Assembly: GCF_026571515.1 (NCBI RefSeq)
Contig: NW_026853675.1
Location: forward strand, 62,001 to 126,000
Source of the DNA: Ruditapes philippinarum
Lineage: Eukaryota
DNA length: 64,000 nucleotides
Reading direction: 5' to 3'
The notes under the pieces were generated by a model. It was not told where the DNA came from. It did not search any database and was given only the letters and a program-made list of their open reading frames with translations. Position numbers and translations under genes: made by a program. Shown piece by piece: positions 13,973 through 58,311 of the stretch (the stretch's first letter is position 1; the number at the start of each line of letters is the position of its first letter).

Positions 13973-16900
13973 ATGTGGAGCAAAACAGTTTTTAGTGTGG
14001 CATGTTATGGACTTTTTTCTGTGATATGTGCTCTGACAACGGATACGTCTGATATACCGAGTACGTGTTCTTTTTCATCTTTTCTATTGTTTAATTGCAA
14101 ATATCAAATTTATTTATTTATTACACATTAGATAAGTAATATATAAATGATAAAAATAGTTGCGATCCACGAATCTTGAATGTAATATTACTATGTATTA
14201 GAGTAAAGGTTGAATAAAATGTTTTGCAACTTTTATCATCATTTTTGGTTCAAAACCTTATGAACTAAAGCCCATGAACATTATATTCATAGCACAAATG
14301 ATAAAACAGGCGACTCAAAGTCATGCTATTGATCAAAACAAATATATTAGACAACAAATTGTTTTTCGTTAGAGAATTGGAGACACGACAAGTAACTAAC
14401 ATTTCAAAATACCGCTATTGTAACAAATTGTGATAACTATTAGATAATTACAAATTCGATTAATGTTGGGTGCATCAGGTTTAATTGCGGGTTGGCATTT
14501 ATAATTGATCGGTCTAAAGCTATGTTGTCTAATTAATCAATTTACAGAAAGAGGTTTCAGATGAAAAATAAAAGGTTGCAAAATAATAGTTCGACGATAT
14601 TACACAGAACAGTGTTATACTGTTAAATTTGGGAAATTTTATAGCACAAGCATTTAAACGCAGGGAATTAAATCAACCGAATCTTCAGACATAATTATAA
14701 AAATGTTATCTTGTTAGTAATATTACTTTATTTCTTTTCATTCTCCATGTTTTGTTAATACAGTCCAAAGATGTATTTGTATCATTGTATGACACTTGTT
14801 AACTTTGATGATTATGTGATGTTTAATTATATTTGAATGTATGTATTTTGTGACCATGTGCATTTTGTACACGTATTATATGAATAAACTTTCTATCAAT
14901 CTTTAAAAATAAGTTGGCATGGAGATGATATGCCGTTTGAAATACTTTTTTGACATTTTACAAAACGATTATCTATTGTTTTGTAGCTTAGAACAGAACG
15001 GCTGTCTAAAAAATTTTACGTGCGTTTACTTTATGTATTTATAGAAAAAAGACTTATCCATTAAACATATAACATTATTTATAGTGTTGTTAACGACCTG
15101 TCAATCACTGGTATATATTTTTGCCGTCACTTGATTAAGAACAGATAATATTGGGGTTGATAATGGGGAGTGGAAGGAAATAATAAAGAAAACAATGTAA
15201 ATAATTTAGGTGGAATATCTTTATTTAGATGCAATATAAACACACAAGATATATTGAAAACAATTAAACTTAAAAAATAAATTTATATATGTATTAGTAG
15301 CTGGAGTGAAATCAGTTATAATTAAAACCCGCAAAATATATCAGAACTAATACCTTGGCAAAAATTAAAAATAAAAATAACCGTCTACTCTATTTGAGAG
15401 GAAATTAAAAAATATATATACCGTGTAAACGACATCTACAATACAAATTCAAAAATATTCAAAACTTTTCGTCAATTAAAAACTGAGTACAACATTCCTA
15501 ATAAAAAAATCATTCATAATACATGCACTCTCCGTAAGTAATAATTCAAAAATATTTACCAATGCAACAGAATATGTATAAAATGTATATTATAATGTTA
15601 TTATGACATGTAAAACTAATAATTGTTAAATGTAAAATGAATGTATAATATAAAGAAAGTATAAATAAACGGGCCCTAAACGAGGTTAAAAACAACAACA
15701 ACAAATAATATTTGCGTGGGCAAATTAGAGTCCCTAAAGAAAGCCCAAAACGGCAAAATTGAAAATGTTGCAGGCTCGGTTTGATTGAGCCTGTTCATTG
15801 ACGGTGCTGTCAAATGCAGACTACCGTCCACGCCACCTAGCATCGGCTTGAGCAGAATTCAACATTTAAACATGAAATGGTAAAAATTTGAGTCTAGAAA
15901 CATTTGCAGATGTGTTCATACGGCGGTTATTATGGAACCTTCAATATGACACTTCCGTGCCATTCAATGAAAAGCGGCGTATGGTCCCCAAGAAAGCGTG
16001 TGCCCTAAACGAGAAACAATGGGCATGGAATTTCGAAAGGGGATCAGAGGTTATTAAGCCAGCATATCACAGATAAGACGTCAAAAGACAGATAGTAGGC
16101 AACATATCCTATGGGTGGTTCAACGTTAGTCAGGAAGAAATATGGGAACCACCCAACTAGGAAATGCCAAACAAGTTAAAACTAAACATACCACAAACAC
16201 AACGTCTTTAAGGATCGGAAAATTTGTTTACTGACTGTAAACAAAAATGAGTAATTCTCATTATAGTTAAAACATGATCTTTAACAAAAGCACAGTTTTG
16301 TGAAATATTTGTATGCATTCCAACATAATAATCATATAATCTTTCGTAAACTAGGCGAAAACTGGCTGATAATCACATTAACACAATCAATGTTACATGT
16401 TTCTATCTAGTGGAGCCCGACTGTATTATTCGTGATCGTAAACTTGATCTATTCTGTCAAATATTAGTGAAATTGCGTTCAACGCCCGTTGTTTAAGGGA
16501 TAAAATGAATCTGTTTAAGGTATACTGACACAATGGATACAAAGGGATTAATGTTAATATCGTTTTCAATACAATCACAAAGATTTATATTTACATTAAC
16601 TGTATCATAAGAGGATCTTTCAGTAAGTTATGCATCCACTGCTTCATTGTAGCGTTCAATAACGGTTTGAATTGTATAGCATAATATGGATGTCAAGTCA
16701 TTTCAAAGCGCACAGGTGGGCCAATTTTTTAAAGCAAAACACGGTACTCTAAGCGTTTGGTCTAAGAAAGTTTTGCGCTTGGTGGGTACCCGATTTTGCT
16801 TACTAATGTAAAGTTGAAACTATCTACTTAAGTATCTATTACCAAGGCTTAAGAAAATACTTTCCGATAAAAGATAAACGTCTAGGGATACTATTGGCAG

Positions 16901-19900
16901 TGCAATTCATCAGTATCTGTGACAGATTCCAAAAGAAGATAATATTTCAGCTTTTCGAAACTGAACAAAGAGGTTACAAAAGCGCATTTTGGTAGAGAGG
17001 GAAGTCTTTAAAGGAAACAATTTCTGAAATGTAAAAGTTGCAGTTTTATCCAGTGAAAGATCTCATTGAATGACAATCGAAAGTCGGGATTTTTTACTAA
17101 ATAAATAGACGCCACGGATAAAAATATCTGCAAAAAGTTACCAATAGTATTTAGCGTAACTTAGTTTAAAAGGATTTACATACATATTTGTATTAATTTA
17201 TCTTATATTTACATGACAATACTTTTATAAAAAGATGTATTTGTTGTTCAAATATTTACTCTAGAAAAAAATGTTTGACCAATGTCGGGCAGGGGCTTTA
17301 TCTTTATTATTCGAGGTAGAATTATCTAAAGTACAAACGGCAATGAGGCATACCCAATAATGTTTGATTTTAAAGGTGTTGTTCCAGAGAGGGACTGTGT
17401 GTGTTTCTTAGGGAGGGAGTTGAACTCTCTTGGATTTAGATATTAACATCTTTTTAAGAATTTATGGCAAACTTTCGTGTTACTAGTATCTCCTCTGTGA
17501 AAACTAATTCACTGGACAATGCATTTTGCATTATCCCTTGTCGGAATTGTGCGACCGCCCCCACCCCCTCAGGTAAGAAATCGTGGAGCCGCGTATTTAA
17601 ACTGATAGTTCATTAGCATGTTTGTGTTTTGTATTTATATTCTTTTATGTGCAGCCTTGCTTTAACATGAATATTTATCATACAACAACCAATTTTTAAA
17701 TTTCAGAGTTGAAGTTGCTATGTGGAAGAGGCAACATCACTCAAGGGATGGAAAATACCATCAAGGTTAGAATATGTACATCTTATATATTAACTTTGAA
17801 TATTCTTTAAGTTGATTTTATCGATAGCCAAAAAGGTATGCTATTGAAAAGCAACAACTTACAAGCAGTGTGGAAAAATAACACACTAACGTGTATTCAT
17901 AAGTGAAAATGATTTGTTTGGAATTTATATGTTTTATATACACATAAGTTCAATATTGTGTAAACCATTCCATTTTGAAATTAACATAAAATGCAACAAT
18001 TATGTTCAAAGAATCAATCATCCGATATAAAAACATTCCTTTCCTTTGTGGATTCAGGGATTAGTTATTTACATTATTGAATATGCACAAAAGCGGTTTA
18101 AAAGTTCGCGGTCATACATAATGAAATAAAAGAATACCGATATACAGAATGTTTGATCAATTTCACATTTTGTAGTATGGGGGCCTCCGGGAGTCGCCGA
18201 CTTTAAAATACTTGCCCGCCACCGCATTTGGGCGTGACTTTAGTTTCTTTCATGTCAGGAAGTGATTAAGCTTGTTTATGAAAGGTCAGTGGTTCTCCGC
18301 TTATGTCTGAGGGGCACTTTGGTCTTCTTCCATCAGAGAAGCTGGAAAGTCGCCATCAAAATCCATCAAGAGTAATAACAACATATAGAAAGAAAAAAAA
18401 AGAAAGAAAGAAAGAAAGAAAGAAAAAAAGAAAAAAAAAGAAACAAACGAATATTAGTAATATAAGACATGCGTTACTGTTTGTTTGATATGTTTGCGAT
18501 TTACTCGTTACTATAAAAATCATTCTGTGTGAAATGATTATACATACATATCGATAATTGAAATTTAATATTTCATAGACTTTTCTCCCATGTTTAATAT
18601 TGAATGCAGGCATAATGAACTGTTACGCTAACTTCATTACTTTCTTTACAGAGTATTTGTCGTTCCAATTACAGCGTAATGGCCCCGGAAATATCAACCA
18701 TCCCGAGCGACAAATTTCCATTAATGTTTGTATCGTACATCAAGGACGATTCGGGGCAAGAATCTTCTCGCGTTGAGATGGAAAGTATGTAAATTAATTA
18801 TTATCGTAAAACAAGAACAAAATCAACTTAAAGCATTTCAAATAATAAAAAAACGCCAAACATAATATTTTTATACTCCAAACTCCTTAAACTGAATAAT
18901 TTATATTTTATTTACATCTGTTTCTACAAATTATTTCCTAATTATCTTTTCCAGTAAACAGTCCAACTGACCTAATGGACAAGGATAATATAACAAAATT
19001 TGTACCAGTTGGAGTTATGGCCCTTTCTGGAAGCACGTGCTCTATTAGAGGTAGGGAACCAGTAAACGTTCTTAATAATTTTTGTGTATTTTATTTATGC
19101 AGGCTTATATCTAATAAGCTATTCTTGAAAACAAAACATCAAAAAGAATATTCTGTTCCCACCGTCATCGTGAATTACAGATAATAGTTACGCTCACCAG
19201 TATGTAATTAAGAAAGTTAAGGTACTGAAAACTGTTTATATAAATACTTGGCATTTTGAGTGCATATTTTTATCATAATAATTTATTTAAACGGATGTTT
19301 GTATCTTTCGTATGTGTTTGTTAGCTTTGCAAAGAAAGAATCACAGAAAAATCCCGTAATTATCAAGAACAACATTATACATTGTAATATTATTCGTGGT
19401 GTAAAAGGCACTATTGTCAAAGTATTTTTTTCAGGAGCTTCAGTCCATTTTGAACTGGAATCTACAAATGGAGCTCTCTTATATCAGGCCCAGGTCAAGC
19501 GCAGAATCTGGTGTGACAACAGCGGTAAACATTTTGATAAAAGACATATAAATGATATAGACTATTTAAGCATAATAAATAAACATGATGTACAACGCCC
19601 GAACTGAGTATGATATTAACCTTCAAATAGAAACGTTCTAGCACAGCACGTGCTAATAAACTTAAGCACAAGCTATTTTAAAAGATAATTGTACTTGCAA
19701 ATATATTCTACAGAAAATGAGTTTATCACTAACTATGGGTGCAATGTATTAAGAAAACCAACAAAACAGAAAAGTAATTATAAAAGTAATTATTGCATTT
19801 CACAGCTAAGTTGAAGCAGCATGCCTCCAGATAATTCAAAATCTTTCAAGAAAATGAAACTTGAGAAATCTAAGATTTTTAGAAAAAGATCCAAGTAATA

Positions 19901-22900
19901 GTTTACAGGTTATTTGCGATTAATTAGTGATTTTGGTGTACCCATTATGTACAAGAAATACTTAAAAAAAAAATTTCAAAAGCTTTTTAATTTTAGTGTA
20001 CTTTATCAATTTCCAAAATGTTAATTGTCGGTAATTTACCTGAATTCTCTTTTTGGCAATAAGTATAGTAATAGTGATTAAGTACTATGTATGGAAGTCA
20101 AAATACTACTTTATTTACACTTTGCAATTTTTGTGACGAATATTTTTCCATTTAGCGCTCCTTTTTTAAAAAAAAAAAACAAGCATCTGACAAGCTCTTA
20201 AGTACTTCAACATATTTGAACATTATTAAACTAATGTAGCAGGAAAAATATTTTCGTTCCTTAGGTATTATGTGCCTTTAATTCTTAAAGTTATTAAATG
20301 CCCTTGTTGCCTCAAAAATGCTTTGAATTTTATTTCTCAAAAGCTTTTTAGTTTTGATGTCCTTTTTACAGTTTTCATAAAATTATTCATTTGCCAATTG
20401 CCTGAAGAGTTTTTTTTTCTCTCTGATGCTTTTTTGCAATAAGTACAGTTATAGCGAATGAGTATTTTTAATGAAAGCCAAAATACTACTTTGTTCACAT
20501 TTTACTTCTTTAATGACAAATTATTTCAGATTTATCGCTACTTTCTTCAGGTAGCAATCATCTAACAATCTCTAAAAAACGAGAATAAAGATCAACGTTC
20601 ACAGGACGCAGCAAAAACCATTATTTAAACATTATAAAATTCATGTTTGCCCTTTCTAAAGAAGTAAAACTTTATTTGTTCCTAAGGTACACGTGTCTTT
20701 CACTCTCAAAGTTATTAAGTCACCTAAAGGAAGGAATTATTATGTCAAAACTTGTTTATCTTATTCTACGGTGTTTCTCATTATCTAAACTTAAATGCTT
20801 TCACTGAATTATTAATTATTTTAAACCTACACCATTTAGGAAAAATAGTACAAAATGTTAAAGTTCCGCAATCGATTTTCCGATCTAATAAGAAACACGT
20901 ACGATAAACGAGATAGAAAGCATAATGTTCTTCCCTTTTGTGTAAAATGGAAAATACATTTGCATATTTCTTTATTCATAAAGGGGCATGATTCCTTGTA
21001 AAACTGAATACATGTATTTGAGCACATGAATTTGAAATTTATTATTTCATTAAACATAGGTCTGTGTATTGAAGAAATTTTATAACATTACCATCTAAAG
21101 GCTGTTTCTAACTATATCGTTACAATAATCATCTCTCTTTTAAAAGTATAGTTCAATAATATTTCAAATTAAGCATCTTTAATATAAAATTAAAGTGACA
21201 ATAGCAATGTTTGTTTATTTTAATGTAGATGTTGATTTGGCGATGCAAGTGACTGGTGGAGAAACACCGACAATTTACCTGGATGGAATAAACTCCCTAA
21301 TGACAGCTTTGTCCGGGTCTAATGTTGAGGTAAAAATCTAGTTTTTTATTGACGTATTAACATATCAATCAGTAAACTTTGTTTTCAATATGATAATTTT
21401 ATCGTGAATTTAATTATTTCTAAAACTCGATCAAATAATAGAAGTTGCTTAGTAATAAAATCAAAAACAATATATTATTTACGTTAGAAGTGTTTTATTC
21501 GTATATGAATTCCGTCTGTATCAACCAATATGATTTAGATTTTCAAGTTTTATATTTTATGTTCATTTCAAGACAAATAAACAATTCCAAAATATTTGAC
21601 TATAAATTATGCAAAGTAGGAACTTTGAAGTAGACTGTAGTTCGCGTGGACATTGCAACCGTTTTTCTTTTTCCGGAACAATGTAAAGAATTGAAGTGTT
21701 CCATTAATCAGATTTTATACACACATTTTAGGTGGTGGCCAAAAACCTAGGCGGAGACTTTCAGGAATTCGTGACAGAGGAAGGAAAAGTGCCGCTCGGG
21801 ATATTTGCTGCAGCGTTCGTAACAAAATATCGTAAAGGAATGCCACTCACAGAAACAGAATGTCTGAATAATGTCAATCATTCAGTACCAGAAATTACTG
21901 ACAAAGATATCATTGTTGCACATGAACTATTCACTGGTAGTAATAATCTATTTATAAATAATTGTAGTTATAATAAATAAACTCTTTACAAATATATTCT
22001 TGTATAAATATGTAATTACCAGTATATTGTTAATTTCAGTGTATGAAGAAAAAATCTTAAAGTGAAATTCTAAAAGGTTGACAAAAACTAATTCTAACAG
22101 TTATTTTGACTGTGATTGATTTTTTGGTAACACTTGATAGTAATCTTGTTATTTCATATTTTGCAGCCAATGCTGACCTGCCATCAACAAAAATCTCTGA
22201 CCTAGTGAAGTTGAATGACGATGAACTGGACATTTGCGGTCTGTAATAAAATAATATCTTGTGTTTTAATGTTAATTTTATGATATTTGTCTTCCAATGA
22301 TGTATATTACTCACACTTTAAATTCATAGAATTAAACGGCTATATTTTTGATGTAGATTTATCTAACAAAACAAAAAGATAGGTAACTGTAGTGTTGTGA
22401 ACTATGCATTGCATTACAGCTAAGAGATAACAGGCGGAATACAGGCATAAATATTCTACCGTATTTGTAAAGACTTAACTCAAAGAATTCGAAAGGATAA
22501 CTGTTCTTTCATTTCTGAGATTTGAGGTAGCTTTATTTGGTGAAATATGTACATGTATGCAATTGTATTTATGCACTTTTTGGACTAGCGGTAATAAATT
22601 GTACATGGCAGCAGCAGATGATCATAAGATAGCAATTAAGACTTAAGTAAAATGGGTACAATCTAATATAGCTACAATTACTGGACTTTTATTTATTTAT
22701 AATTGTTTATACTGCCAGAATTATCTTTTTTGAAGGATTTTTTATATCTATATACAGGTGATTATGTGTTAGTACTGCTAATTGACGTTCTGAACACACT
22801 AGGGAACGAAGGAAATCGCTGCAACAATTTTGTTACTTTCCGTATAAATTCTACGAAAAAATGTGATTCAGGTATGAAAAATATTTTTTTACAATCTTAA

Positions 22901-25900
22901 TGTAATGCTTGATTACGATTACAAGATGTACAGCACTTGAACAACTTCCGGCAATACAATATTACAACAAAAGCAATATGAAAACTTAATTAAACATTGC
23001 AATTGTAAAATACTACAGTACACTGAAAAGCTTTCTAACAAAACATTAAGCGATGCATCTCAATTATGTGCAAAACATTATGAAAAGATACAGCGCAGAA
23101 CTAAATGCAAAATGAAATGAATAAAAAAATTAATTTCTACTGTTTACAGTGTTGTACAAATCATAGTAAAAGTGACGTTATTCAGTTGAGCAAACCGTTT
23201 ACATTTTCACATTAATGTTGTTTTATTATTTTTGTTTTATCTCAACAATGTACATCGCGCTTGATTACGGAGATAAATCTAAATGATGTTATAAAGTACT
23301 AGTATCTTTAAAAGTCATGATTTTCTATCAAAATCAATTTTACCCTGATATAAAGTAATTCTATCCATGTATGTTGCAATATCGAATTTTTAAAAATCTT
23401 TATCAATGACCACCATTTCAAGTATAAACATTATATTAAAAGTAACAGCAACTGTGCAAAAGAGAACACTGCAAGATCATTTTAAAGAAATATTTCCATA
23501 CGAAAATATTTCAAATAAGCAATATAACGTTATTTTTTAAGTGCATCCACGTTGTGAATTGATAAGGAACGCATGGACTGATGGTGAAGCACGAATTGTT
23601 TATAGAGGTAAACGTGACACGACAATGGAACCGTATGGGAAGTCATTCTCATTTCAGGTATATCTCATATAACACTATCTTGACTTTAACTTCTACTTAT
23701 TTAGATAGTCGGAGAAATTACTTTGATAAAGATTATTAATCAAATTCTTTTAATGCTTACCTTTTTTCTCTGAGATGAGGAAACGCTTTTGTTTTAAATG
23801 GTTATCTGTATATCTATTAATTTCACAGACATTTTCATAGGCCATGAGTTATGCAAATAGTTTACTGAAAAGTGAAAAGTTTCTTTTCTTTTCAAAGAAT
23901 GATATTATGTATACATTTTGATGTCCTGTTTTAACACCAACGTTAGTGGTAAAGAATTTATGCTCATAGCTACATAGGTATTTTTGATTTCAGGACGAAA
24001 AACTAGAAGAAGTATACGAGAGCATGCAAGAGAAGATGTACATGAAAAATGCATATGGTCGGTTGAAGCTTCTGAGACATTACATAGAGAAACTCGTTGA
24101 AAACAGTCCTGGATTATGTACCGGTAAGTTAAAACATTTATATAAGTGTTATTCTGTGGTTATAATAATAAAGTTAATTATTGGATCGGAATTTCCCAGT
24201 TTTGATAAACATTTTTTTTTAAATCTTGATTAAATAGAGAACAAACATTTAACACTGCACATATTTACATTATTTTGCTACATTTGCAGAGTCATCTGAT
24301 ATGGTACACAAAATGGAAGAAAATGCAGATGACAGTGTCGTACCAGAGGAAAATGAGCCAACACTACCAAGTTCAGTTCTGAACGTTATTGAAAAACTTA
24401 AACAACTAAGCGATCCAAGTGTAGTAGGTTTAGCTTGTTTTATTGTATTAGGTAACTATAGGTACCTGTTCATGGTCAAGGATTCAGACCAAAAATTGAC
24501 AATAATTAGATATACCTGTTTTACGTAACCAGTAAATATTTAGCCATTTAATTTTATAATTATATAATCATATGTGAAAGGAAAAATATACTTAAAGTGG
24601 CATCATGCCCATCTGTTGGTAAATGGTCGGTGAACTGGTAAAAATCAAAATTTGACGTTTTGCATCGTGTTCAATTTTAAATTTTATCATGAAAAATGAT
24701 CAGTAATTCACATTACCGACGGAAACGTCTATAAACAGCTTTCGAATATATCAGATCGTTTATATATTGTATCATATACATTTTTCAATATCAATTAGTG
24801 GTCAATTATCATTTTAATAGTCAATCTTTAAAAATATATACTGAACATGACATTGTAACCATGTCACTTTAATAGGACATCAATATATACTGTTTATTCC
24901 TATCTTTATTTTCTTATTTAGATATTCAAGTTAGATATGAAGTTCAATTTATTTAGCTTCAAATGTAGCTTTAGATTATCAGAAAATCAAATCCTCATTA
25001 GTATTATCATTATGTTTTTGAATTGAATTTATCCAAATTCAGTTATTGAATGGTTTACCACAGTTGTCAAATATTCATTCACAGGACAGTAGTACCATTG
25101 TTTTGGAATTTGAAAATGCGCTCAAACAATTAGAAGCTCAAACTACCGTTGGCAAAAACCTTTATGAAATGCTCGTGCATAAAATGGAAATACATGCGTT
25201 GGGAGAAGCATTACATGTCATATCTGAAGGTGGCTCTACTACGGACACTAGTTACTGTGACTTACCGGGACGTTTTGAAGAAATGCAATGGAAATACACA
25301 GATGGTCAAGACATACATGAAGATATGTTCAATCTTGCAGGTGATACTGTTTCGGCCTTTGTCAGTAATCCTGGCTTATCCTGTCTGGAGAAAATTCTCA
25401 AGCGTTTTCTAATTTTTGCTGAAAAGGCTGATGCAAGTGAGGTAGTCGATCCCGCGTATCTCACAGCTGACGAAGAATCGGTTGCTAAAGAAGATGATCT
25501 TAGACATTGCGCAAAACCAAGCAGGTGTATCAAGAAGCTGCATAGAATGTGTAACGCTAAAGACATTTCCATATGGCAGGAAATTGACGAAGAAAGCAAA
25601 TCTGAAATTTGTAAGATGTATGTGATGAAGAAAGTGGCAAGGGAAAGTTTTATGACATTGGGTATGCCGGATATATACAACAAAATGAAACACTACGATG
25701 ACGTACGTAAGTAGAATTTTATTCTGTTTGTGATACATTGTGTATGCAAATTATGAAAGTGGATTCTGTTTTACTCTATTTTATTGTCACATCCGTGTTA
25801 TTTGTGCCGTGTGGCGGCTGTAAAAAGTCTCCCCGTACATTAAATTAATGATGTTATATTTTCGATCCGTGAAGATCGTTCAGCACGACATTTTTGTTGT

Positions 25901-27290
25901 GTATACATTTTGGGTGGTATTTTTGGTTTCTTGTAATTGGCCTTTTTCAACTCGGGTGGTTCCAGTGTTCCTACTTATATCCTGTATAATCACCCTCAGG
26001 ATATGTTGCCTGCTTTTTAAATTTATCTTTTGACGTCTTGTCTGTGATATACAGGCTTCATAACCTCAGATCCCTTTTCAAAATTCCATTTTATTTAGTT
26101 TCGCCCATTGTTTTCTCGTTTAGGGCACGCGCATTCTTTTACTAAGGGAACATACGCCGCTTTTCATGGAATGACACTACTATGTCATATTGAAGGTTCC
26201 ATGATAACCGCCGTATGAACACATCTGCGGATGTTTCCAAATTCAAAACAGTTTTCTTAAAGGATTCTGTTTTACTCTATTTTTAGTGGTTAACCCGTCG
26301 GACTAGTGACCGAAAGATCGCTCGCTAAACCCAATCAAGGGCAAGTCGTTGTTTCTTCGAGCTATAAAACTTAACACTCATTGCTCAGTACTGGTTGGTT
26401 TCCAGGAACGGACTCGAAAGTGTGTCTATTTCCTTATAGCTTCCTACGAAATCAAAGTAAGAACAAAACTAAAAAAGAGGAAACTGAAATCCCCAAAGAA
26501 CGCCAGTAGAATGATGCAGTTTTTCTTATTGTATATGCGGATTGCAAGTTAACAATAGCACCAGATATTCATAAGAAAGTTAAGCTTTTTTAAATCCGAC
26601 ATTTAGAATTCCTAATAACTTAAAGTTAGTAATATCTGTATGAAATAATAAATATATATAAGAAGCTCGATCAATTCAGTTGTATTTTTATTCAAGAATT
26701 ATTTCATTATTCATGACTTTCAGAATGTAACCGGGATCCTCTAAAGCCAGATCAAGCCGGACCTCCAACATATTGGAAAGAGATGAGTAAGTGTATCTTT
26801 TTAATAACTAACTGTCAAAAAAACAATAAATATTTAGTTTAAAAGTAAATAAAATGATATTGATAAGGTCTTAAAATTGTTCTACGTAATTTTCAGTAAC
26901 ATTCAAAATGATGATTTAAAGGTAAAGTTACTAAGGGTAATGGCAGGAGAACAAATATTGTCTCAAAGGTAATATGGAAAACATGAGCGATACTTGTTAA
27001 CAGAAATGACCGCCACATGCGATAAGACATCTGAAAATATTTACCATAGTAACAAAATTTTAATAAAAAGAGTACTTTACCAGTCTAGTTCTTTTATCAT
27101 CTTAGCTGAGAATGGACGGAAATACATTATGCATGGTATGATGAATGAAGATGCTTCGAAAATAGCTTGGCGCAAAAAAGCTGTATGCAGCTGTACAGAA
27201 TGTGTCGCAGGGGGTATGACCGGAGAGTCTGGCGGTGAAACACCAACTGAAGGTGGGAACGATGGAATGATGCGCAGGAGGAGAAAATAG
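13973..27290 (+). CDS. Gene A: uncharacterised secreted Cys-rich protein, 749 aa, 15 exons (paralog 1 of 3)
   Basis: Exons: 13973-14060, 17707-17765, 18652-18784, 18955-19050, 19435-19524, 21229-21329, 21732-21936, 22167-22238, 22758-22871, 23542-23657, 23994-24123, 24290-24423, 25043-25706, 26724-26786, 27106-27290. All introns are GT-AG, phases are consistent, and the total of 2250 nt has no internal stop. Signal peptide MWSKTVFSVACYGLFSVICA. AATAAA directly after the stop. Exon-by-exon similarity to genes B and C. Confidence 0.88.
15735..16115. repeat. Interspersed repeat in gene A intron 1
   Basis: Direct similarity to 2590-2780 and inverted similarity to 25990-26245. Confidence 0.75.
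18178..18358 (+). mobile_element. Degraded tRNA-derived SINE followed by A-rich tail
   Basis: GGGGCCTCCG head and ...GGTCTTCTTCCATCAGAGAAGCTGGAAAGTCGCCAT body, reverse-complement-similar to 4450-4610 and 47218-47420; (GAAA)n/polyA at 18388-18445. Confidence 0.6.
19979..20725. repeat. Diverged tandem duplication (~360-390 bp unit) in gene A intron 5
   Basis: Paired blocks AAGCTTTTTA, GCAATAAGTA.AGT.ATAG, CAAAATACTACTTT and TTCCT.AGGTA...AAAGTTATTAA each occur twice in the same order. Confidence 0.6.
25783..26261. mobile_element. Insertion flanked by a 22-bp direct repeat (target-site duplication), containing an inverted copy of the 15895-16115 repeat
   Basis: GGATTCTGTTTTACTCTATTTT at 25761-25782 and 26262-26283; long TSDs are typical of TPRT-mediated (non-LTR) insertion. 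Confidence 0.65.
26284..26475 (+). mobile_element. CORE-type SINE remnant
   Basis: Degenerate tRNA-like head (AGTGGTTAA), then ACTTAACACTCATTGCTCAGTACTGGTTGGTTTCCAGGAACGGACTCGA resembling CORE-SINE body, then an A-rich end. Confidence 0.5.
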
Positions 27291-37800: not shown

Positions 37801-37916
37801 TGATATGATAGTCCGTTGCTTTTAGATAATGCTTTTTACCCCCTAAAAAATGCTACCCCCCCCCCAAAAAAAAAAAATAAATGAATAAATAAAATGATAA
37901 TAAAAAATAATGATAC

Positions 37917-37972
<56 letters not shown>

Positions 37973-47906: not shown

Positions 47907-50900
47907 ATGGATGGAAGTAATTTATGCCTTCTTGGCAGTGTTTGTTGCTTTCTATATTGCATCTTTTCGGTGCAGAGTTATGGTGGTGGTAAGTTTTCAT
48001 TTCTGATTTCTTCCTAATTTTATATATGCTAATCTTATATAGTTTTAAACTGTCAATGTAAAATAATATAAAGAATGTTTTCCTTTGCTTTATTATACAT
48101 AAAGCTAGCGGAGATGAATATTTGAGTTGCCGTTATAATACTTTAAATTTTATTTCAAAAGTCAATTTGTAAAAGCTATATGATAAATCTATTTAGAACC
48201 GCTAAAATGATGACAATACAAACCACATGAATCAAGGATCTAAGTTTAATATTGATATAACCTTTGAAAGTAAATTAGTACCAAAGGGGTCACACTTTAT
48301 ATTTCTCAGTCATAGTTGCGAAAAGAATATTTTTGTTGCTTATTCAATTCCATTTTGCACTAAAAATTTAAAACCTCTTTAGATAAAAAAAACATATCTC
48401 GTCTGCTTAATTAAACTACCAACATCATCATCAACAACAACAAAACTGGTCCTCCGTCATTAAGAGTTTAAATATTCTAATATCTAAACATTAAGTAAAT
48501 AGCTTAAGAGTGTTCTTACTACGACATCAAAAGTTGGTTCTGAGGGCGTGGTTTGTCTGATATTCGGCAAGATTCTCTATACCTTAAACGGATGGCACCG
48601 ATTTGATAATTCTTGGTCACTAGCGTTCAAAACATAATAAATCCATTACACGAATTTAGCAGGTTTAAGGTAATATCCAACCCGCAATTTTTGATATGTA
48701 ATTTTAATGTTAATAAAGTAAACTCTCATATCGGTTTGCTGAAAAGAAATTTTATTCACATGGATAAGATGCAATTTTTTTTATTGTATAAAGGTCTTAT
48801 AAGACCAATCACTGATTATGGAAATATCATTTATTACCCTGTAACAAAGAAAAATAAACAATTAGTGGAAAATACCCAAAGAAGAGCTACAAGAATCATC
48901 CCTGAACTAAGAGTACTCACATATGAACAAAAATTAAAGGCTTTCTATTGATTACAGACGTCAACGTGGAGATATGATACAAGTTTTTAAACTTATTCAC
49001 AAAATAGACTACGAAAGCCTAATAGTGTCAAATAAAATTAAAATAAAAATGCAAAGGCGTTAAAACGCGAATAAAGGCGTTATTACGCGAATCAAAAGGC
49101 GTAATGACGCGAATAAAGGCGTTATAACGCGAATCAAAAGGCGTAATAACGCGAAAAAGGGCGTTATAACGCGAATAAAGGCGTTATTACGCATTTTGAT
49201 TCGCGTTATAACGCCTTTATTCGCGTTATTACACATTTTGATTCGCGTTACAACGCCTTTTTCGCGTAATAACGCTTTTTATTCGCGTTTCTACGCCTTT
49301 TTCGCGTTATTACGCATTTTGATTTGCGTAATTACGCCTTTTGATTCGCGTAATAACGCCTTAAATTTATTCGCGTTATAACGCCTTTGCATTTTTATTT
49401 TTTTATCTTATTTGACACTATTAGGCTTTCGTAATAGACGATTTTGACTATGAAAAGTTGTTCAAATTATCTGTTACAAATCATGAAATCTGAGGACATA
49501 TTTATTAATTAGAAAAGTTAAGACCACTAAAGGCAATAAGACAAAATTCCTTCTCTAATAGAGTCGTAAACGAATGGAACCTACTTCCCAGTGAAATAGT
49601 TTTATCAAAGAACGTTAATGAGTTCAAATCTAAATTAGATAAACACTGGCAATGGAAAAGATTCAAACTTGACAATATCTATTGAATAGACCAATACCGG
49701 AGCGGACGACAATGAAAACAGCTCTCGAGGGGAATGATAGTCCGTTAGGGGACTAATAAAGTTTCCCATACATCACAAGTATCACACGTATAACTGTATA
49801 GATATATGTTATATCTGTATTTAAGAATTTGCGTATGAAATAAGTACAAAATAAAATATAGTGAACTAATGATGGAAATTGGGAAAACGATAAAATTGTT
49901 GTCCGAACAATGTAAGTAAATGTACTATCGTTTGTTGTAGTTGACGTAAAGTTAGGCCTAACATTCGATGGTGGACTTATGGATGTTGATCCAAGTATGT
50001 TTCCCACAATAGAAGTAACAGAGACTCCTGGACGCAAATCCCTCGCAAATATTATCGGTGATATGATGGTGACACATAATGTGGAGGTAAGCCTTAAATA
50101 TACACATGTAGGAGAAATAACTTGTGATGTCATAAAGTCAAGATTTCATCAGGCAAAAATGTATTTCCATTTTTTTTCTGCGTTTAAAATGTCAAATATT
50201 GATAAAGTTTAATGACACAGAAGACAGGATTAATCATTGTGAATATCTAAATAAAAAATATATTTTGAGTTACATCTTATTCATCATGTAATTAAACTTG
50301 AAACAGATGAAAACGTATGTGAACTTTTTACCAGATTGTTGCTACAGCTTCTCCATTACCTTCCACCGAAACTGATGAATGTTTCTTTGTTGTCGGATTT
50401 CTATCTCCTCTTGAAAGCATCACCGCCACAAAACCGTTCCCAAACAGGCAAGAATGTGAAAAGAACAATCTACTACCAACCATCGGAGTTGCTGACGAAA
50501 TTTTAGGATATCCGCAATGTATCAAGTGTATGTATGAGACAANNNNNNNNNNNNNNNNNNNNNNNNNNNNNNNNNNNNNNNNNNNNNNNNNNNNNNNNNN
50601 NNNNNNNNNNNNNNNNNNNNNNNNNNNNNNNNNNNNNNNNNNNNNNNNNNNNNNNNNNNNNNNNNNNNNNNNNNNNNNNNNNNNNNNNNNNNNNNNNNNA
50701 ATTTAAAAATACTGTTTTATACCTGATATGAAATCTATGAATATTATTATTTATAATTTAATTTAGTTAATATAAATGCTGTCTCTTAAATTGATTGAGG
50801 CAAACACTGTCAGATCAATACTAGGATGAGATCGGACGCGTTTTAATTCAACGTGTATAACGTTTTGTATATGACCATATGCACTGTCTGTACGTAAATA

Positions 50901-53900
50901 TGCTTGGGCTTATAAGCCTTATTTGATTGTAATAAATTGTCTGCCTGTCTAAATAATCCACTGAACGAACAAAAAGCGCGGTGACATGATATATCTAAAT
51001 CGTATTGGATTATGTATATCGTTTAGTGTCCTCTGTAATCAAATCAAACAGTTCAATGAAAGCTTTGACTTAAAATATTTATATAAAAAAGTATTTTAAG
51101 TCCCAAATGAAAATATTATGAAAAATATAATGAAAAAGTAACAGTGCATATTTTGCAAGTTTTGAATCCGTTTTTTTTTTTTTTTTTTTTTTTTTAATTA
51201 TGACACTAACCGTCATATATACATGTACATATATACATGTTAATAAACGTATCAATTTTCATACTCATTTTTGCTATTAAAATCTACATATAAGTGTATA
51301 GACAATAAAGAGTTATTCGGCCTGTGCACTAGTTATGTATAAGTTTAACTTAATCAATCTTTCAGATGCAGACCTTGAAAATAGTGATTTCACTAAGTTG
51401 ATTGGAGAACACGGCCGTACACACTGTGGTAATTAATTTGTTTTAGCACTGTTTATTAAATATTAAAAAAAATATTTAATGGATAGATGTAACTACTTTA
51501 TCACAGATTTGTACCCGAACGGTGTACAAAAGTAATTTCTATCGGCATACCCATGGCAGGCCTGTCGCAATACCGATGCGATTCAATAATTGTTGTTTCT
51601 AGAAGAACAAATTAAAGATATACACTGTTGATATCATACCGTTCAAGATTTTATACTTACTACATAGGTTACCACTTCAATTTATGTTTCTGGTAAAAGA
51701 AATGTGAAGGACAAGTTCTAAAATTCTCAAGGAGATGAGAATAACTATTGACAAGTCATTTTCATTTGAAAAAAAAATATACTCATGATTCTTAACAATT
51801 AGCAATATGTGAAACCCGTTATTAAAGTTATGGTGCTTTTACTTATAAAAAGTGATTCATCTATTTAGTTGTTTTATCTAAAAGCGTTTTTCTTGAGCAC
51901 ACTTTACAGGTTTTTAATAATTGGTATTTATCAGGTTAGTATTTATAGTTAACATATATAAATTGTGCAGGTATGTACCGTTTGGTGGGTATGTTGGATC
52001 CATTACGGGAGGTTCAAGGTGACACAAACTTCTGTAACAACTATCTTACGTTTGATATCAACTTTAACTGCTCCATTCAAACAGTCACGGGTATGTTACT
52101 TTGTTTTGGAAATTAGAAACATCGTTTACTATCAGTACAAATTAAAAGTACTCAAAGTTTACGTAAGCAAGCAAGACAATGGAAGATATTAATAATCTAT
52201 CGCATACTACACCCACAGTAATTTCAAAACAATCGGATAGCTCGTGTTGTTAAATTAAGCGTACAATAATCTTTCTTAAAGTCTCTTGATGGCTTCAATA
52301 ATTTAGTTCTCTGTATGAAAAGAAATAAGATAATGCAACAACTGCCACATAAAATACGCTAAACTTTCAATATGAGGTGCTTATTATTTAGTAGAATTTA
52401 ATTGTCAATATATTGTTTTTCTCAATGTTGTTTTGACATGACCTTGACCTTACGTCCTCCTACAACTTGAAGTGCAGAACAAAAAATAAAAAATACATAT
52501 GTATTTTCTAAAATACTATCAATAATGTTTTCGTCTTGTGATATTTCACAGTTAAAAATACAGACGAATACAAAAATAATGTCTATAATTGCTTAACGCC
52601 TTTACTAATGGATAAATCATACTATGACTATCAATGCAGTAAAACCACTCACATTTTATTTTATAGAGCCTACTTGCGATTTGCTCCCAATGGAAACCGA
52701 AGACGATGACGTTACATTACTCTACATGAATCACATGCGGACTGAAGGGGTGTATGGTCAACCAAGGAGGTTCAAACATGCTATGCAAATGTTTAGACAA
52801 AGGGTAAGTTTCATGATAGGAAGAATATGGGACAGTTTCTGTTATGCTTATGTAAATTTGAAAGAAAAAAATACACGACTCATTATCAAAATGCTAAATT
52901 GTTGAATGCAAGCAAATTGTTTGAATGAGATAATAGATGGTAAGGTAAATTTCAATGGTCGAATTGAACAGAAAAATATTGCAGAACAGGTCGTATGGCA
53001 ATTGAGTGAGAAATTCAAGGGAGTAAACTCTTGCAAACAAAATGGCAAATATAATATGGTCACAATTATTTCCTTATTATCATATGTTTTCATGTTAATT
53101 TTCAAGTCAGATTTAACGACCATAAAATTCGGTGTTAAAGTAATGTACAAGACAGCATCTCATTTCAAACTATACATTGTATGCATATACTGTTAATATC
53201 TTTACACAATTAAATGTTTTAATCTCTAGTGACAAAGAAATACTGGAAAATCAGATATTGACTATTTGTTATTATCCTCCGTTAGGCAATGTCTCCTGAA
53301 TGGAATGAAGAGTATGAAAAAGACTATGATGTAGTTGGAAAATATGGAAAGATGTTTACTAAAATAATGAGAGCCTATATTAAAGGACTTCCGAAGGAAT
53401 CTTACCTTGATGATTGTTCCAGGGAAAATGAAAATGGTAATAATAATTTACACATAAAACAAGATACTAGGAATTTAGTTTACCAAAATTTGTTTAACTT
53501 CAAGTCTCACAAAGTTGTTCTAAAGCCCAAAAAGTATGACACATAATGTTTTCCTTTTTTTTTCTTCTTTAGTAAGGGCAAACATAAGTTTTATAACATT
53601 GAAGTAATATTTGTGGAGCATACTAGATGACTACTACCTGAATACATAGGCGCTGAATGTAAAACTATTTGTCGTAAAAGTTAAGAAATAAAAACAAAGT
53701 TAAATTGCCTTTACAAAATGCTCCACACGATAAGTGTACTTATTGCAAAGAAAAGCAAAAAAAAGCAAAAGATGGTTTATGTAATTGGCCAATAACTAAA
53801 TGATTGCAAACTATAACAGGCACGTAATGATTTATTAACGCCACTAATAAAGAATGTTTATAAAATGAAAACATGTTTATAAATAGCTAAAGAATGGGTA

Positions 53901-56900
53901 AAAAGTCAACTGAATGAGTTTCAAGGGTTAAACGGTGAAAACACATGGGGTGATGCGAATGAAGAAAGTGTTATCAATTACCGACGACTTCTAGACTTGA
54001 TCAAACGCTATGTACAAGAAATGAAAGTAAGATATTTTCTTATTAAACAAAAATGTGTTCTAAGGTATAATTGGCAAGTCTCACTGTGTTAGATTTCATC
54101 TCATTTTTTCAGATACATTGGTTGTTTATTGTCATATGCTTTCCAATATTTTATGGAAATCAAAAACAGATATAATATAGAGAATATTTATTTCACGTAT
54201 ACGAAGATGTTCAGAAAATTATGAAACTAGGGTCGTATATTTAAATGCAATACATCAAATTTACCAAATTCACTTCAAGTCTTCAAGTAACCGTTTTAAA
54301 TGATACAAAGCAGTCACTCCAATAGTTATGCACCCTTTTTCAAAAGTTTTATCCACAATTGAGCAGTGTCACGACAAAACCAACATAATGGGTTTGCGAC
54401 CAGCATGGATCCAGACCAGCCTGCGCGTCCGCGCAGTCTGATCAGGATCCATGCTGTTCGCTTTCAGTTTCTATACTTGTTATAGCAGTTTCGTTAATCT
54501 GAAATAGGTATATCCTTTAGGTTCTTAACTAGTGTTGTCCCAAGAGCATTGTATGTTGTACAGACAAGTACGATTTACAGGATAGTTAAGAACATTTGTT
54601 GTTGTTGTTGTTTTGTTTCTAAAAATGTTTTCAAATTGTCTAGCTTATGCGACGATGCTTTGTCATACCAAAATTGAATATAATATTAATTTTATCCATC
54701 CCCGTTTTTAGTCGCTGTTTTGAAAATATATTTTCCTAGTTTTTTCAAGATAACATTTTCATAGATGTTTTTCCGTCATAGAGTTTGTTTTCGGGACATG
54801 TATCTAGTATGCTTAACTTTTATCACAGACAAAATTACGTGTGACATCATCTATACAGATTGTGTCCTTTTTGCTGGTCTCGTAGTGTTTTAATTGCCCA
54901 TTCACGATTTGCCTGTTTATTTCTCCGCTCAAAGTATTGTGTTCATTTTTGTCCTGCTTAATTGAAAATAAAATAGTATATATATTTTAGAAACATTTTC
55001 CACGTTTACTTGGCCTTCAAAGTGAATGTTTAGAAACAATTACACTTTACGCATGTGAATAGTGTATCTCAAATAGTTCGTGTATCACGTGATAGGTATT
55101 TGCTTAGTTTCATTATTTTTTAACAATCTTCGTTATACCGATAAACAGCTTTTTTTGATGACAATAACAAAAAAACAAAACAAACAAATTCATTAATCAA
55201 CAAAATAATTTGTACAATAAAGTACAAATGTGATATTAACATTTACTTAATAATTAAATATAAATGCATACGATATTATACAATTTAAAGTCGAACAATT
55301 GAAATAGGACGTAAATTTTACGCTTCAAGAAAGAAACAAGTTACAATCGTGGTAATAAAAAATGATAACTTGCAAATAACTAAACTATGAATTACTTTGG
55401 ACAGGATGAAGGTCAACTATCGAACATTGCTGAGAGACTTCGGGCGGAGTTAAGTTCTCTAGGGTATACGTCTGCTGGCGAACTGACAGGTGTCAGAGCA
55501 ATGAATGCAACTATAAATGAAATGATTTCCCTTGTACGCAATCATAAACAAGAAATTGCTAAGAAATATGTTGCTAAAGAGGTATGTGGAGTAGCAAACA
55601 CACTAGAAAGATTCAAGCAAATGTCAGCACAAACTCAGTATCAGTATATGGATCTTGCTGGTAAAGAAGTAAAGGAAATGATTGCAAAGTTTTCGGACAC
55701 AACATCCTCGCTGGCAGTCAAGCTAATGTTTTTCTATCCAGAATTTTATGACACGTGTTTCGAGAACATGCTTATGCATTTACATGATGCTTTGAAACAA
55801 GACATACAATCGGTAAGATTTGACTGGATGAATGATGAATCATTTCAACAACGACTGAATGATTACAGGATGAATAAGACAGGGTTTCCATTTAACGAAG
55901 GAATCTATGCTAAACTTTTACATGGCTGTGGTAAAAGGAACGCATGTATCCGAAAGATGAAGAGCATGTGTAGACAACAGGACCAGTCGTTTACTGGAAA
56001 TGGTGAGACCGTTGACACTCTAAAAGAGGATGTTTGTAAAATGAGACGCCTGAAGGAAGTAGTATCTAAACATGCAAAACGTATCTCCGACAATAACATG
56101 ATGCAAATGGGCACAATGCAAAAGGATCCATTTGGTAAATGCATTTTGTTCTGTGGTTTATAATGTGGTTAAGACTGTTTATGGGTTCTTTTTTATACGC
56201 CCGAGAGTATAACGGAGAGTATTGTTATGTACCTGGTCGTCCGTCTGTTAACAGTTTCCATGTCCGTTCTGAATATTTTGAACCGTTGGATGGAGATTGA
56301 AACCACCTGGCAGAAATTTTAATTTTTAATGAGACGATGAGCGCATGTTTGACATTCATCATGTCAAGATCAAGGTCACACTTAGTTATTTTGTATGAAT
56401 CTCAAAATTCGTGTCCGGTCTGTATCTTTTGAACCGATAGAAAGATGTTAAAACTCTTTGGCGAAAACAGTACTTACATACAGGTGCTTGAAACATTTCT
56501 GTTTCTATTGAAAACTTAGAAATAACATAATTTTGTTTGTTAAAAAGTTTTTATTCGGCTGAGTAGGGTGTTAAAAGATACTTCTTGTTTTAAAAAGGTG
56601 GTAGAATATTAAATGTTGATCATTTTGTATTCGTATGATAAAGAAATATGCTTCGTATTTTTCGCAGATTTTGGTATTACTTCAAAAGATTCAAATATCT
56701 ACATTTCGGTAGAATATTTTTGTCTTTAACATTATTGGTGAATTTTAAACATAAGTATCAGTAATCAATTACAAATCTTTTCAGATAATATAAGTGTACT
56801 TGATATTTAATAAGAATGCTTCAATAAATTTAGTGTCAATTAATAATTATGAAGTACTCTATTATCTCACAGATGCGGTATGTAATGGAAATGACAAAAT

Positions 56901-58311
56901 GACTACAAGAAAACAGATGCCGTTGACGAAAATGGGTAAAATTTTGTTATCTACCTAAAATTACTGTCATTATAAAATATCACAATCAAATATGAAAAGT
57001 ATTGTAAATTTATGTCTTATTTTTACGTGTATGACAAGTCTTAGCTAGATATTTACCTTTCAAAACGTCCAAGTATAACAGGAGTTCAATGTGCTGTGCT
57101 TGTAAAGAACTTGTGATATATAAATTTGTATAGTTTATTTTTTTAAAGTTTATAATCAAGCACTTTATGTGTTGAAGATTGTTTGAGAGAAGCGGCACTT
57201 TTTTACATTTAAACTCATGAACAGACTCAACAACAGCCAGTCTGAATTTTTCATATAATTCTGTTGTTTCTTTTGTTTCCAGCATATCTATTAAAGGGAG
57301 AAACAGGCAAAATTTTCATTTCTTAGTTTTGAATTTTTCATTCATTATTCTGTAAATGTCCTCAAAATTAAAACACTAGACTGTCACAAGAACAAAACTT
57401 TTCTCCTTATAAAGAATAAAACGTTGGTTTCCTAACTTGATCCAAGTGGGTCAGGTTATCTAGAGCTTAAGATTTCATAATACTTGTTACAGTGAACTCT
57501 TGAAACGTTAAAGTACATGTCAAATGAATAACTTACACTTGTTTCAGTCATACAATATCCCTAGTATATGTTATTGTAACTTCCTGGGTTTGTTAGTGTC
57601 ACATGACTTGTTTTAAAACTACTCGGTGATTGATTTTGTCGGGGTCTAAATTTTGTTCTACATATATGAATACATTCACGCTTCAAACCCTAAATATCTA
57701 GAAAATATACAGAAATTCATGCTGGGACTTAAAAAATGTCATTTTAGCGTGATTTGAGTACATAAAATCATTTTAATATTTTGTCATTGTTTGCCTAAGT
57801 ATCCCTAACACTAACAGTATTCGTTATTTTATAAAACGTTGAAATACAACTTGTTTAATATTGAAAAGCGTCATAAGTAGTGGTGTGATTAATTTTATAT
57901 TATCATTACTATTCATGATGATAATCAGCAGTGACATATCTTCTACTTTTAGAGAAAGGCATAGTAAAGAGAGGGTACCTTGACCTTGAGAACAAAATGG
58001 TAGCCTGGCAATCTATTGCCCGGTGCACTTGCGATCATTGTGGCAAACATCCGGTCAAAGGAGGTGGTGAATCAGATGACATAGCTTACGCTGACGACAA
58101 AGATACATCCGATTCTCATGGAGAAAGAGACCCTAGTCACTACCCGAATGGTGAGTATCCTGAAGATGATGGAACTCGACCTTCCCGTGAAGATGATGGA
58201 GACACAACGGAGGGTGATGATGTAGGTGAACCAGAGCACCAAGGAGATACAGAATCCGATAGATATCCTAATGAACATGATGACGGCAGATATCCCTACA
58301 GGAAAAAATAA
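47907..58311 (+). CDS. Gene C: uncharacterised secreted Cys-rich protein with acidic C-terminal tail, 727 aa, 11 exons (paralog 3 of 3; lacks the module encoded by exons 2-5 of A/B)
   Basis: Exons: 47907-47988, 49941-50086, 50335-50527, 51366-51428, 51971-52090, 52667-52803, 53286-53436, 53887-54026, 55405-56134, 56873-56935, 57953-58311; 2184 nt open, GT-AG introns. Signal peptide MDGSNLCLLGSVCCFLYCIFSVQS. Shares AMNAT, YPEF, DWM, GC...C...MC and CTC-x-x-C motifs with gene B. Confidence 0.86.
48706..49790 (+). mobile_element. 5'-truncated, degraded CR1-type LINE (C-terminal part of ORF2) in gene C intron 1
   Basis: Translates to GLLKRNF...LYKGLIRPITDYG...VENTQRRATRIIPEL..LTYEQKL / RRQRGDMIQVFKLIHKID / RQNSFSNRVVNEWNLLPSEIV..KNVNEFKSKLDKHW, typical of the CR1/L2-clade region downstream of the reverse transcriptase; contains frameshifts and stops. 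Confidence 0.85.
49010..49433. mobile_element. Palindromic non-autonomous DNA transposon (TAC...GTA termini, 6-bp TSD; IS3EU-like) nested in the CR1 remnant
   Basis: TIR TACGAAAGCCTAATAGTGTCAAATAA / TTATTTGACACTATTAGGCTTTCGTA; TSD ATAGAC at 49004-49009 and 49434-49439; internal 20-22-bp tandem units AAAGGCGTTATAACGCGAAT that invert near 49190. Confidence 0.85.
50543..50699. other. Assembly gap (157 N) inside gene C intron 3
   Basis: Run of N; flanking exons splice in frame and match consecutive exons of A/B, so no exon appears to be lost. Confidence 0.99.
54360..54484. mobile_element. Half copy of the palindromic MITE
   Basis: Left arm only: TGAGCAGTGTCACGACAAAACCAACATAATGGGTTTGCGACCAGCATGGATCC... 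Confidence 0.85.
56189..56470 (+). mobile_element. Helentron/HINE-like non-autonomous element remnant
   Basis: TTTTTATACGCCCG start, CGTCCGTCTG microsatellite-like motif, CAAGATCAAGGTCAC motif and an internal duplicated TGTCCG.TCTG.AT.TTTTGAACCG block. Confidence 0.5.
56672..56803 (-). repeat. Inverted single copy of the 58670-59249 repeat unit, in gene C intron 9
   Basis: Reverse complement reads ...ATCTGAAAAGATTTGTAATTGATTACTGATACTTATGTTTAAAATTCACCAATAATGTTAAAGACAAAAATATTCTACCGAAATGTAGATATTTGAATCTTTTGAAGTAATACCA. Confidence 0.85.

Follow-up and report, generated by a model that had tools for sequence, protein, structure and literature searches.

Three old tandem genes encoding an unnamed family of putatively secreted proteins in the clam Ruditapes philippinarum

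A tandem trio of genes in the window

The stretch of DNA analysed here (hereafter, the window) comprises 64,000 nucleotides (nt) of contig NW_026853675.1 from the Ruditapes philippinarum assembly GCF_026571515.1, and it carries three co-oriented, mutually related predicted genes, denoted A, B and C. The window is AT-rich (~31% GC) and includes a single run of 157 N at 50543-50699. When the stop-free segments of the plus strand were compared all against all using blastp, three collinear sets with weak similarity to one another were returned. Examples are the trio formed by 22739-22846, 40709-40816 and 51967-52080, and a second trio formed by 25499-25666, 44319-44480 and 55918-56085.

Gene models were built with our own exon-chaining program, which combines codon log-odds from the clearest segments with generic splice matrices and phase bookkeeping. 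A profile hidden Markov model (HMM) prepared from seven public homologs was added to the chaining as a guide, and ambiguous sites were settled by hand. Gene A (13973-27290, plus strand) comprises 15 exons encoding 749 amino acids (aa), with intron phases 1,0,1,1,1,0,1,1,1,0,1,0,1,1. Gene B (31895-45139, plus strand; 16 exons, 785 aa) has the phase string of A and one extra phase-0 intron, which lies within the big exon that encodes the helical domain described below. Gene C (47907-58311, plus strand; 11 exons, 727 aa; phases 1,0,1,1,1,0,1,0,1,1) is without a counterpart of exons 2-5 of A and B. As this set of exons both starts and ends in phase 1, its absence from C keeps the reading frame. 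There are no internal stops in any of the three spliced frames, each of which is open over ~2.2 kb. The individual exons are listed in Table 1.

A preliminary description of the same DNA had proposed three co-oriented genes of these lengths. The present models, which were built independently of its coordinates, arrive at the same lengths and reproduce the phase strings, the extra intron of B, the missing four-exon block of C and the total of 39 introns. The further claim that the frames are intact holds as well, given the lack of internal stops and the shared intron positions.

The introns of A, B and C are of the GT-AG type in 38 of the 39 cases. The remaining one, intron 10 of B (41454-42290), is a GC-AG intron with the donor CAG|gcaagt, a strong consensus; A and C use GT at this site. 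In the alignment of the three proteins, intron positions and phases coincide, and conserved residues span most of the predicted junctions, as in HC|GMYRLV, NPF|DAVC, CDNR|GGKG and SDQ|VRD. Three acceptors are ambiguous, by 2-14 aa: those of exon 13 in A (25043, 25064 or 25085), exon 4 in B (37161 or 37176) and exon 8 in C (53887 or 53893). For exon 13 of A the alternatives at 25064 and 25085 are in phase, and the choice of 25043 retains the residues QLSNI, which are common to C.

The run of N falls inside intron 3 of C (50528-51365), beginning 15 nt past the donor AAGT|gtatgt. The junction of exons 3 and 4 is in phase 1 and coincides in the alignment with the corresponding junction of A and B. 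Across it, C reads YPQCIK|YA-DLE where the Mercenaria ortholog reads YPKCIN|SSEDLE, with an alignment gap of one residue. Since the ortholog is collinear over this junction, the two flanks of the assembly gap behave as a continuous coding structure. At the level of the sequence, the window is thereby confirmed as holding three separate, intact, co-oriented protein-coding gene predictions, ancient tandem duplicates of one family.

Homologs, orthology and age of the duplications

For the external searches and for structure prediction, single exons and public orthologs were used, and the joined proteins were compared locally. The large exons of A, B and C were combined in a profile, and a search of 1.84 billion representative proteins with it yielded 14 relatives (E <= 1e-3). 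The named relatives, all annotated as 'uncharacterized' or 'hypothetical', come from Mercenaria mercenaria, Mactra antiquata, Dreissena polymorpha and Mya arenaria, and therefore all from Neoheterodontei (Venerida, Myida); the rest are unnamed fragments. Mercenaria has LOC123525084 (XP_045159758.2, B-type), LOC123525082 (XP_045159756.2, C-type) and the partial A-type member LOC123525832 (XP_053394168.1), and all three loci are situated on one 104-Mb sequence. The other members are Mactra antiquata KAL4237168.1, Dreissena polymorpha LOC127863131 and Mya arenaria WAR23615.1.

A, B and C share 23-24% pairwise identity. In blastp, B aligns end to end with the relative P0006 (36% identity over 815 columns, E 9e-166) and C with P0004 (37%, E 5e-125), while A matches P0005 at 33% (E 2e-95) and, over its full length, P0007 at 27%. 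Identity to the more distant members amounts to 20-32%. In a maximum-likelihood tree, A, B and C are each paired with a different Mercenaria protein (support 100/99, 95/95 and 100/100, respectively). The Mactra protein joins the B group outside the pair of B and its Mercenaria ortholog (96/98), and the Mya and Dreissena proteins form a clade of their own, so that the window genes are nearer to Mercenaria than Mactra is. Because each copy has a separate Mercenaria ortholog, the duplications are older than the split from Mercenaria, and all three lineages have remained intact in either descendant. The tree paths from ortholog to ortholog measure about 1.7-2 substitutions per site.

The members from Mercenaria, Mactra, Dreissena and Mya resemble A, B and C in full-length collinearity, in their cysteine framework, in the motif W-x5-CxCxxC and in a basic tail. 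The likeness to Mercenaria extends to 1:1 orthology for all three genes and to a C-type protein (LOC123525082) that has the acidic tail and, like C, no counterpart of exons 2-5. The Mercenaria orthologs nevertheless differ from the window copies in sequence, with identities of only 33-37%.

A six-frame search of the 1.41-Gb genome (15,874 contigs) with a full-length profile of the family gave a copy number of three, all in the window. None of the 14 protein matches is identical to a window product, the closest being fragments from other sources with 48-70% identity; A, B and C of this assembly thus appear to be absent from the collection of 15 billion proteins and may be unannotated or have been kept out of it. 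Among the matches, P0007 (773 aa) is encoded on a Logan contig of 3.7 kb. As this length is too short for the 14 introns of the family, the contig lacks introns and probably represents an mRNA from a related clam, which indicates that a relative is probably transcribed and spliced.

Four of the fragments found in ENA and Logan differ in their distance to the window genes. P0002 and P0008 are 64-70% identical to the large exons of B, and P0001 and P0003 are 48-49% identical to the large exons of A and C. If these fragments come from one species, B evolves markedly slower than A and C.

Protein features and predicted architecture

Each of the three proteins has a hydrophobic, signal-like N-terminus as judged heuristically from Kyte-Doolittle hydrophobicity. 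Later 19-residue windows reach a mean of at most ~1.6, and no candidate membrane span was found among them. The proteins contain 22-23 cysteines and 3-9 N-x-S/T sites and are predicted to carry a net acidic charge. They end in a run of basic residues (RRRRK in A, KKRK in B and RKK in C) that is present in nearly all relatives. Upstream of this run, C has an acidic, low-complexity tail of 89 residues (31% D+E) containing Gly, Pro and Tyr; the tail of its Mercenaria ortholog is similar in composition and different in sequence.

Across the ten aligned members, eleven cysteine columns are invariant and one more is kept in nine of the ten; all twelve are present in A, B and C. The preliminary description had listed conserved cysteine positions, and every one of its motifs was located: C|G-x-Y (at the junction of exons 8 and 9), CNN, xCE/D, C....LE, C-x5-C-x7-C, [IV]C and W-x5-CxCxxC. 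Its picture of secreted proteins with a signal peptide and no obvious transmembrane segment agrees with the heuristic profiles above. It had also described old duplications whose copies were all kept and which are very divergent outside the cysteines; the 23-24% identity and the separate Mercenaria orthologs (support 95-100) say the same.

The structure of the B ortholog P0006 (797 aa) was predicted with AlphaFold2 from an alignment of seven homologs, giving a predicted local distance difference test score (pLDDT) of 67 and a predicted template modelling score of 0.69. The model is beta-rich over residues 39-411, consists of long helices over 421-730 and has a small beta domain at 751-783. In this model, the stretch corresponding to exons 2-5 is the first compact beta module, residues 37-171 of P0006. 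The large exon of C (243 aa), folded with ten fragments, is predicted to be all-helical and to form four-helix bundles (pLDDT 62).

Together these models suggest, with moderate confidence, an architecture in five parts: beta-sandwich module or modules, beta region, helical bundles, C-terminal beta domain and lysine/arginine tail. The protein would begin with beta-sandwich modules resembling immunoglobulin (Ig) or macroglobulin (MG) domains, one in C and two in A and B, each apparently encoded by four consecutive exons with a phase-1 intron on either side. These would be followed by a further beta region and then by a putative disulfide-stapled region of ~300 aa, with long helical bundles that would be encoded mostly in one large exon. 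The small C-terminal beta domain would hold the W-x5-CxCxxC motif and precede the basic tail. In C, the first module would have been lost in frame, or never acquired, and the long acidic tail of C, like that of its hard-clam ortholog, is predicted to be disordered.

Four-exon modules between phase-1 introns are a classic mark of shufflable extracellular modules. Exons 2-5 encode module 1 and exons 6-9 module 2; each set of four has phases 0,1,1 inside and phase 1 at both ends, and both modules are predicted to be beta-rich in the P0006 model. In a profile-profile comparison of the two modules with hhalign, no sequence similarity was detected (probability 0.4%). The suggestion that one four-exon block occurs twice is thus backed by exon number and phases alone.

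Searches for a named family

When Pfam-A was scanned with 7 full-length homologs and ten exon translations, no family exceeded its gathering cut-off. Sub-threshold matches were at chance level, for example UPAR_LY6 (14.8 bits, cut-off 24.8) and HSL_N (17.2 bits, cut-off 25). With the family profile, no chain among the PDB sequences fell below E 0.1, and no paper was found in the literature for the locus or accession names of the Mercenaria, Dreissena and Mya members.

The P0006 model was used to search for structural homologues with Foldseek. For the whole model the best matches were alpha-2-macroglobulins (A2M) and complement C5, but with template modelling (TM) scores of 0.08-0.16. When Foldseek and VIA-align were applied to the 797-aa model and to the 243-aa exon model, only generic sandwich and bundle matches were obtained. 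In the ESM Atlas, the whole protein yielded no usable feature match (pLDDT of its own model 0.37), and residues 37-415 gave CARDB leads only, at a score of 0.82, which lies under the bar of 0.9 below which scores are reached by shuffled proteins one-third of the time. CARDB (PF07705) had no match at E <= 1 in the 7 homologs.

Among helical proteins, the nearest resemblances are to up-down four-helix bundles (TorS, QseE, the ligand-binding domains of MCP, de novo bundles and toxins of the ClyA/YaxB/Cry6Aa type), all with fold scores below the bar of ~13 used for helical proteins. The bundle predicted for the window proteins differs from these in being stapled by conserved disulfides, and it has no sequence similarity to them. 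Pore-forming toxins of the ClyA type, tripartite ones included, were rejected as a candidate, as the window proteins have no hydrophobic pore-former hairpin and the fold match is not clearly above background.

The family is unnamed: its parts have common folds, and their combination matched nothing. The earlier statement that it could be assigned to no named family is upheld by the Pfam, PDB sequence and fold searches, which were all without a convincing match.

Table 1. Predicted exons of genes A, B and C and the assembly gap (positions in the window; end phase, phase of the intron that follows; HMM E, expectation value against the family profile)
Feature	Position	Strand	End phase	Remarks
A exon 1	13973..14060	+	1	ATG, signal-like peptide MWSKTVFSVACYGLFSVICAL...; donor CGA|gtacgt; hydrophobic N-terminus
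A exon 2	17707..17765	+	0	junctions collinear with P0007
A exon 3	18652..18784	+	1	similar to B 36675-36788; HMM match
A exon 4	18955..19050	+	1	
A exon 5	19435..19524	+	1	closes predicted beta-sandwich module 1
A exon 6	21229..21329	+	0	opens module 2
A exon 7	21732..21936	+	1	HMM E 9e-6
A exon 8	22167..22238	+	1	ends ...DIC
A exon 9	22758..22871	+	1	GDYVLV...NRCNNF; paralog blastp; HMM E 3e-12
A exon 10	23542..23657	+	0	HPRCELIRN...; tblastn with P0005 and P0007; HMM E 2e-7
A exon 11	23994..24123	+	1	HMM-guided
A exon 12	24290..24423	+	0	exon chaining
A exon 13	25043..25706	+	1	big helical-domain exon; paralog blastp; HMM E 5e-26
A exon 14	26724..26786	+	1	QCNRDPLKP...; paralog blastp
A exon 15	27106..27290	+		W-x5-CSCTEC, RRRRK tail, stop TAG
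B exon 1	31895..31964	+	1	ATG, signal-like peptide MARTGNFSTYLCFIMFVIGINAQ; donor AAG|gtattg
B exon 2	35915..35985	+	0	
B exon 3	36699..36855	+	1	HMM E 9e-11; tblastn with P0006
B exon 4	37176..37292	+	1	alternative acceptor 37161 = +5 aa
B exon 5	37535..37630	+	1	closes module 1
B exon 6	38092..38225	+	0	opens module 2
B exon 7	38715..38904	+	1	paralog of C 50323-50523; HMM E 9e-14
B exon 8	39926..39994	+	1	
B exon 9	40728..40844	+	1	GQYTLV...SKCNNF; paralog blastp; HMM E 1e-13
B exon 10	41305..41453	+	0	followed by GC-AG intron (CAG|gcaagt)
B exon 11	42291..42426	+	1	
B exon 12	42893..43041	+	0	
B exon 13	43557..44027	+	0	helical-domain exon, part 1; followed by extra intron; HMM E 2e-23
B exon 14	44274..44505	+	1	helical domain, part 2; HMM E 1e-14
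B exon 15	44691..44750	+	1	ECRKDPLAP...; paralog blastp
B exon 16	45000..45139	+		W-x5-CTCEKC, KKRK tail, stop
C exon 1	47907..47988	+	1	ATG, signal-like peptide MDGSNLCLLGSVCCFLYCIFSVQS; resembles N-terminus of P0004
C exon 2	49941..50086	+	0	counterpart of exon 6 in A and B
C exon 3	50335..50527	+	1	donor 15 nt ahead of N gap; HMM E 6e-11
Assembly gap, 157 N	50543..50699	.		inside C intron 3
C exon 4	51366..51428	+	1	
C exon 5	51971..52090	+	1	GMYRLV...NFCNNY; paralog blastp; HMM E 9e-12
C exon 6	52667..52803	+	0	
C exon 7	53286..53436	+	1	
C exon 8	53887..54026	+	0	alternative acceptor 53893 = -2 aa
C exon 9	55405..56134	+	1	big helical-domain exon; tblastn E 5e-37 with P0004
C exon 10	56873..56935	+	1	NPF|DAVC kept in P0004
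C exon 11	57953..58311	+		W-x5-CTCDHC, ~89-aa acidic low-complexity tail, RKK, stop

Neighbouring gene and repeats

A gene on the opposite strand lies ~12 kb upstream of A, at 239-1869 of the window, and comprises two long open frames on the minus strand. The frame at 1192-1869 encodes 225 aa with a signal-like start, MELTSSLYCINVIMCLTSCVG. The frame at 239-1207 encodes 322 aa that are Thr/Ser-rich and mucin-like, with an EGF-like domain at the end (Pfam EGF, E 2.5e-7; score 31.3 bits, cut-off 21.5). An intron or a frameshift is suggested by the overlap of 16 nt between the two, in which the reading frames differ.

A dispersed repeat, whose translation in one frame includes ...DPDQPAHPRSLIRIHAVR..., is present in four copies, at 41050-41300, 54349-54487, 59870-60090 and 61685-61900. 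Two of these copies are located in introns of B and C and two downstream of C; the repeat is probably a short interspersed nuclear element (SINE) or another transposon fragment. Intron 1 of C contains a tandem array (49053-49389) whose units measure 20-22 or 42 nt and are based on the palindrome GCGTTATAACGC. Open frames that by eye look like retroelement remnants lie on either side of the array, at 48610-48948 and 49509-49682; no Pfam match was obtained for the transposon-like open frames in introns and flanks, these two included. Microsatellites are present in intron 5 of B, as ~40 copies of (AAT)n at 37888-38003, and in intron 2 of A, as an A-rich (AGAA)n tract at 18387-18447.

Discussion

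The reading that we favour, and hold to be quite probable, is that the window contains three real, intact and old tandem genes of an unnamed, lineage-restricted secreted family, and that their products are distinct, soluble and extracellular. The products would be binding or scaffold glycoproteins. The sub-functionalisation of A, B and C may date from before the split from Mercenaria; they would then work as three separate proteins and would be neither interchangeable with one another nor part of a growing receptor repertoire. Several points weigh against this reading. All 39 predicted junctions rest on homology, phases and splice consensus, and the signal peptides were judged from hydrophobicity alone. 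The structure models are of moderate confidence, and the alignments behind them are shallow (7 and 11 rows); matches by fold lie within the range reached by unrelated proteins, so that the domain labels are descriptive and do not denote kinship. The taxonomic range depends on one helical-exon profile and on the state of annotation. As for function, the reading is drawn from the architecture alone, and the tissues that have been suggested (hemolymph, mucus, egg coat, shell or ligament) are guesses.

It is conceivable that at least one of the models does not represent a functional gene but an unexpressed, still open relic or a set of wrongly joined exons. The models are known here from genomic sequence alone; A, B and C are not among the 14 matches from the protein collection, and three acceptors are ambiguous. 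Set against this are the ~2.2 kb of open frame in each gene, canonical splice sites at homologous positions, the retention of every conserved cysteine and full-length collinearity with separate orthologs. Since a relic would not stay open across about 1.7-2 substitutions per site, we regard such an error as extremely improbable. Scarcely more probable is a kinship with known proteins, in which the family would be a very divergent branch of the A2M, complement and CD109 proteins, or a CARDB-type adhesin, cut down to few domains. The TM scores of 0.08-0.16 are accompanied by whole-chain root-mean-square deviations of 9-30 Å, and the same module matches RbmA (Vibrio, FnIII-like), VPS26 and transglutaminase barrels equally well. 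Where an A2M protein has a thioester domain (an alpha/alpha toroid), the helical region resembles generic bundles only, and there are 2-3 sandwich modules against an array of 7-8 MG domains. Pfam gave no A2M, TED or CARDB match even at E <= 1, and no motif of the GCGEQ type was seen on inspecting the family alignment, for which no explicit motif search was made.

The remaining alternatives accept the genes and concern the roles of their products. The preliminary description had raised two of them, a complex and a diversified recognition family. A, B and C could be non-redundant subunits of one hetero-oligomeric secreted complex, kept together for that reason. All three lineages are retained as 1:1 orthologs on a single sequence in Mercenaria, the genes are in tight tandem and common orientation in the window, and long helical bundles often serve as oligomerisation surfaces. 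Tandem position is, on the other hand, simply how duplicates arise, and the Dreissena and Mya matches comprise a single gene per species, grouped in a separate clade. The family can thus apparently function with fewer than three types, which is weak evidence that an obligate complex of three subunits was not the ancestral state, although annotation gaps could also explain it. On balance we consider a complex unlikely. The more specific form of this proposal, an obligate secreted hetero-oligomer specific to neoheterodont clams, with a helical core and with the differing N-terminal sandwich modules, the basic tails and the acidic disordered tail of C as binding surfaces (for example for matrix, mucus or mineral), appears unlikelier still.

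Fast-evolving recognition proteins, either of humoral immunity or of the gamete or egg coat, would have surface residues subject to diversifying selection on a fixed disulfide scaffold. This would suit orthologs that are so little alike while 12 cysteine positions are fixed, the divergence being very high if both species are venerid, and it would suit beta-sandwich modules of the adhesion or recognition type in a lineage-restricted family. The diversified recognition family of the preliminary description fits poorly, however, with exactly three copies in 1.41 Gb and 1:1 orthology. Three stable genes with no lineage-specific expansion are few, the small copy number is unlike typical bivalve immune repertoires, and no lectin, C1q, FReD, ZP or other recognition domain appeared in the Pfam scans. 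We consider this reading doubtful, albeit with some chance of being correct, and fast divergence on a fixed disulfide scaffold leaves an immune or reproductive role possible. The view that A, B and C are three long-separated soluble extracellular proteins is the one that we retain.

Lineage-restricted secreted proteins are abundant in bivalve genomes and account for much of what is distinctive in the biology of these animals, in shell, ligament, mucus, immunity and fertilisation. As it stands, the finding offers no new mechanism and has no bearing on a long-standing question. What the window does provide is a clean, small case, in which one unnamed family is represented by exactly three ancient paralogs in tandem, the phase 1-1 four-exon modules are clear, and one paralog is without a module, in frame. 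Very fast sequence turnover has taken place atop a fixed disulfide scaffold. The trio would lend itself well to expression mapping, proteomics and structure determination, and the family is a candidate for a new entry in Pfam.

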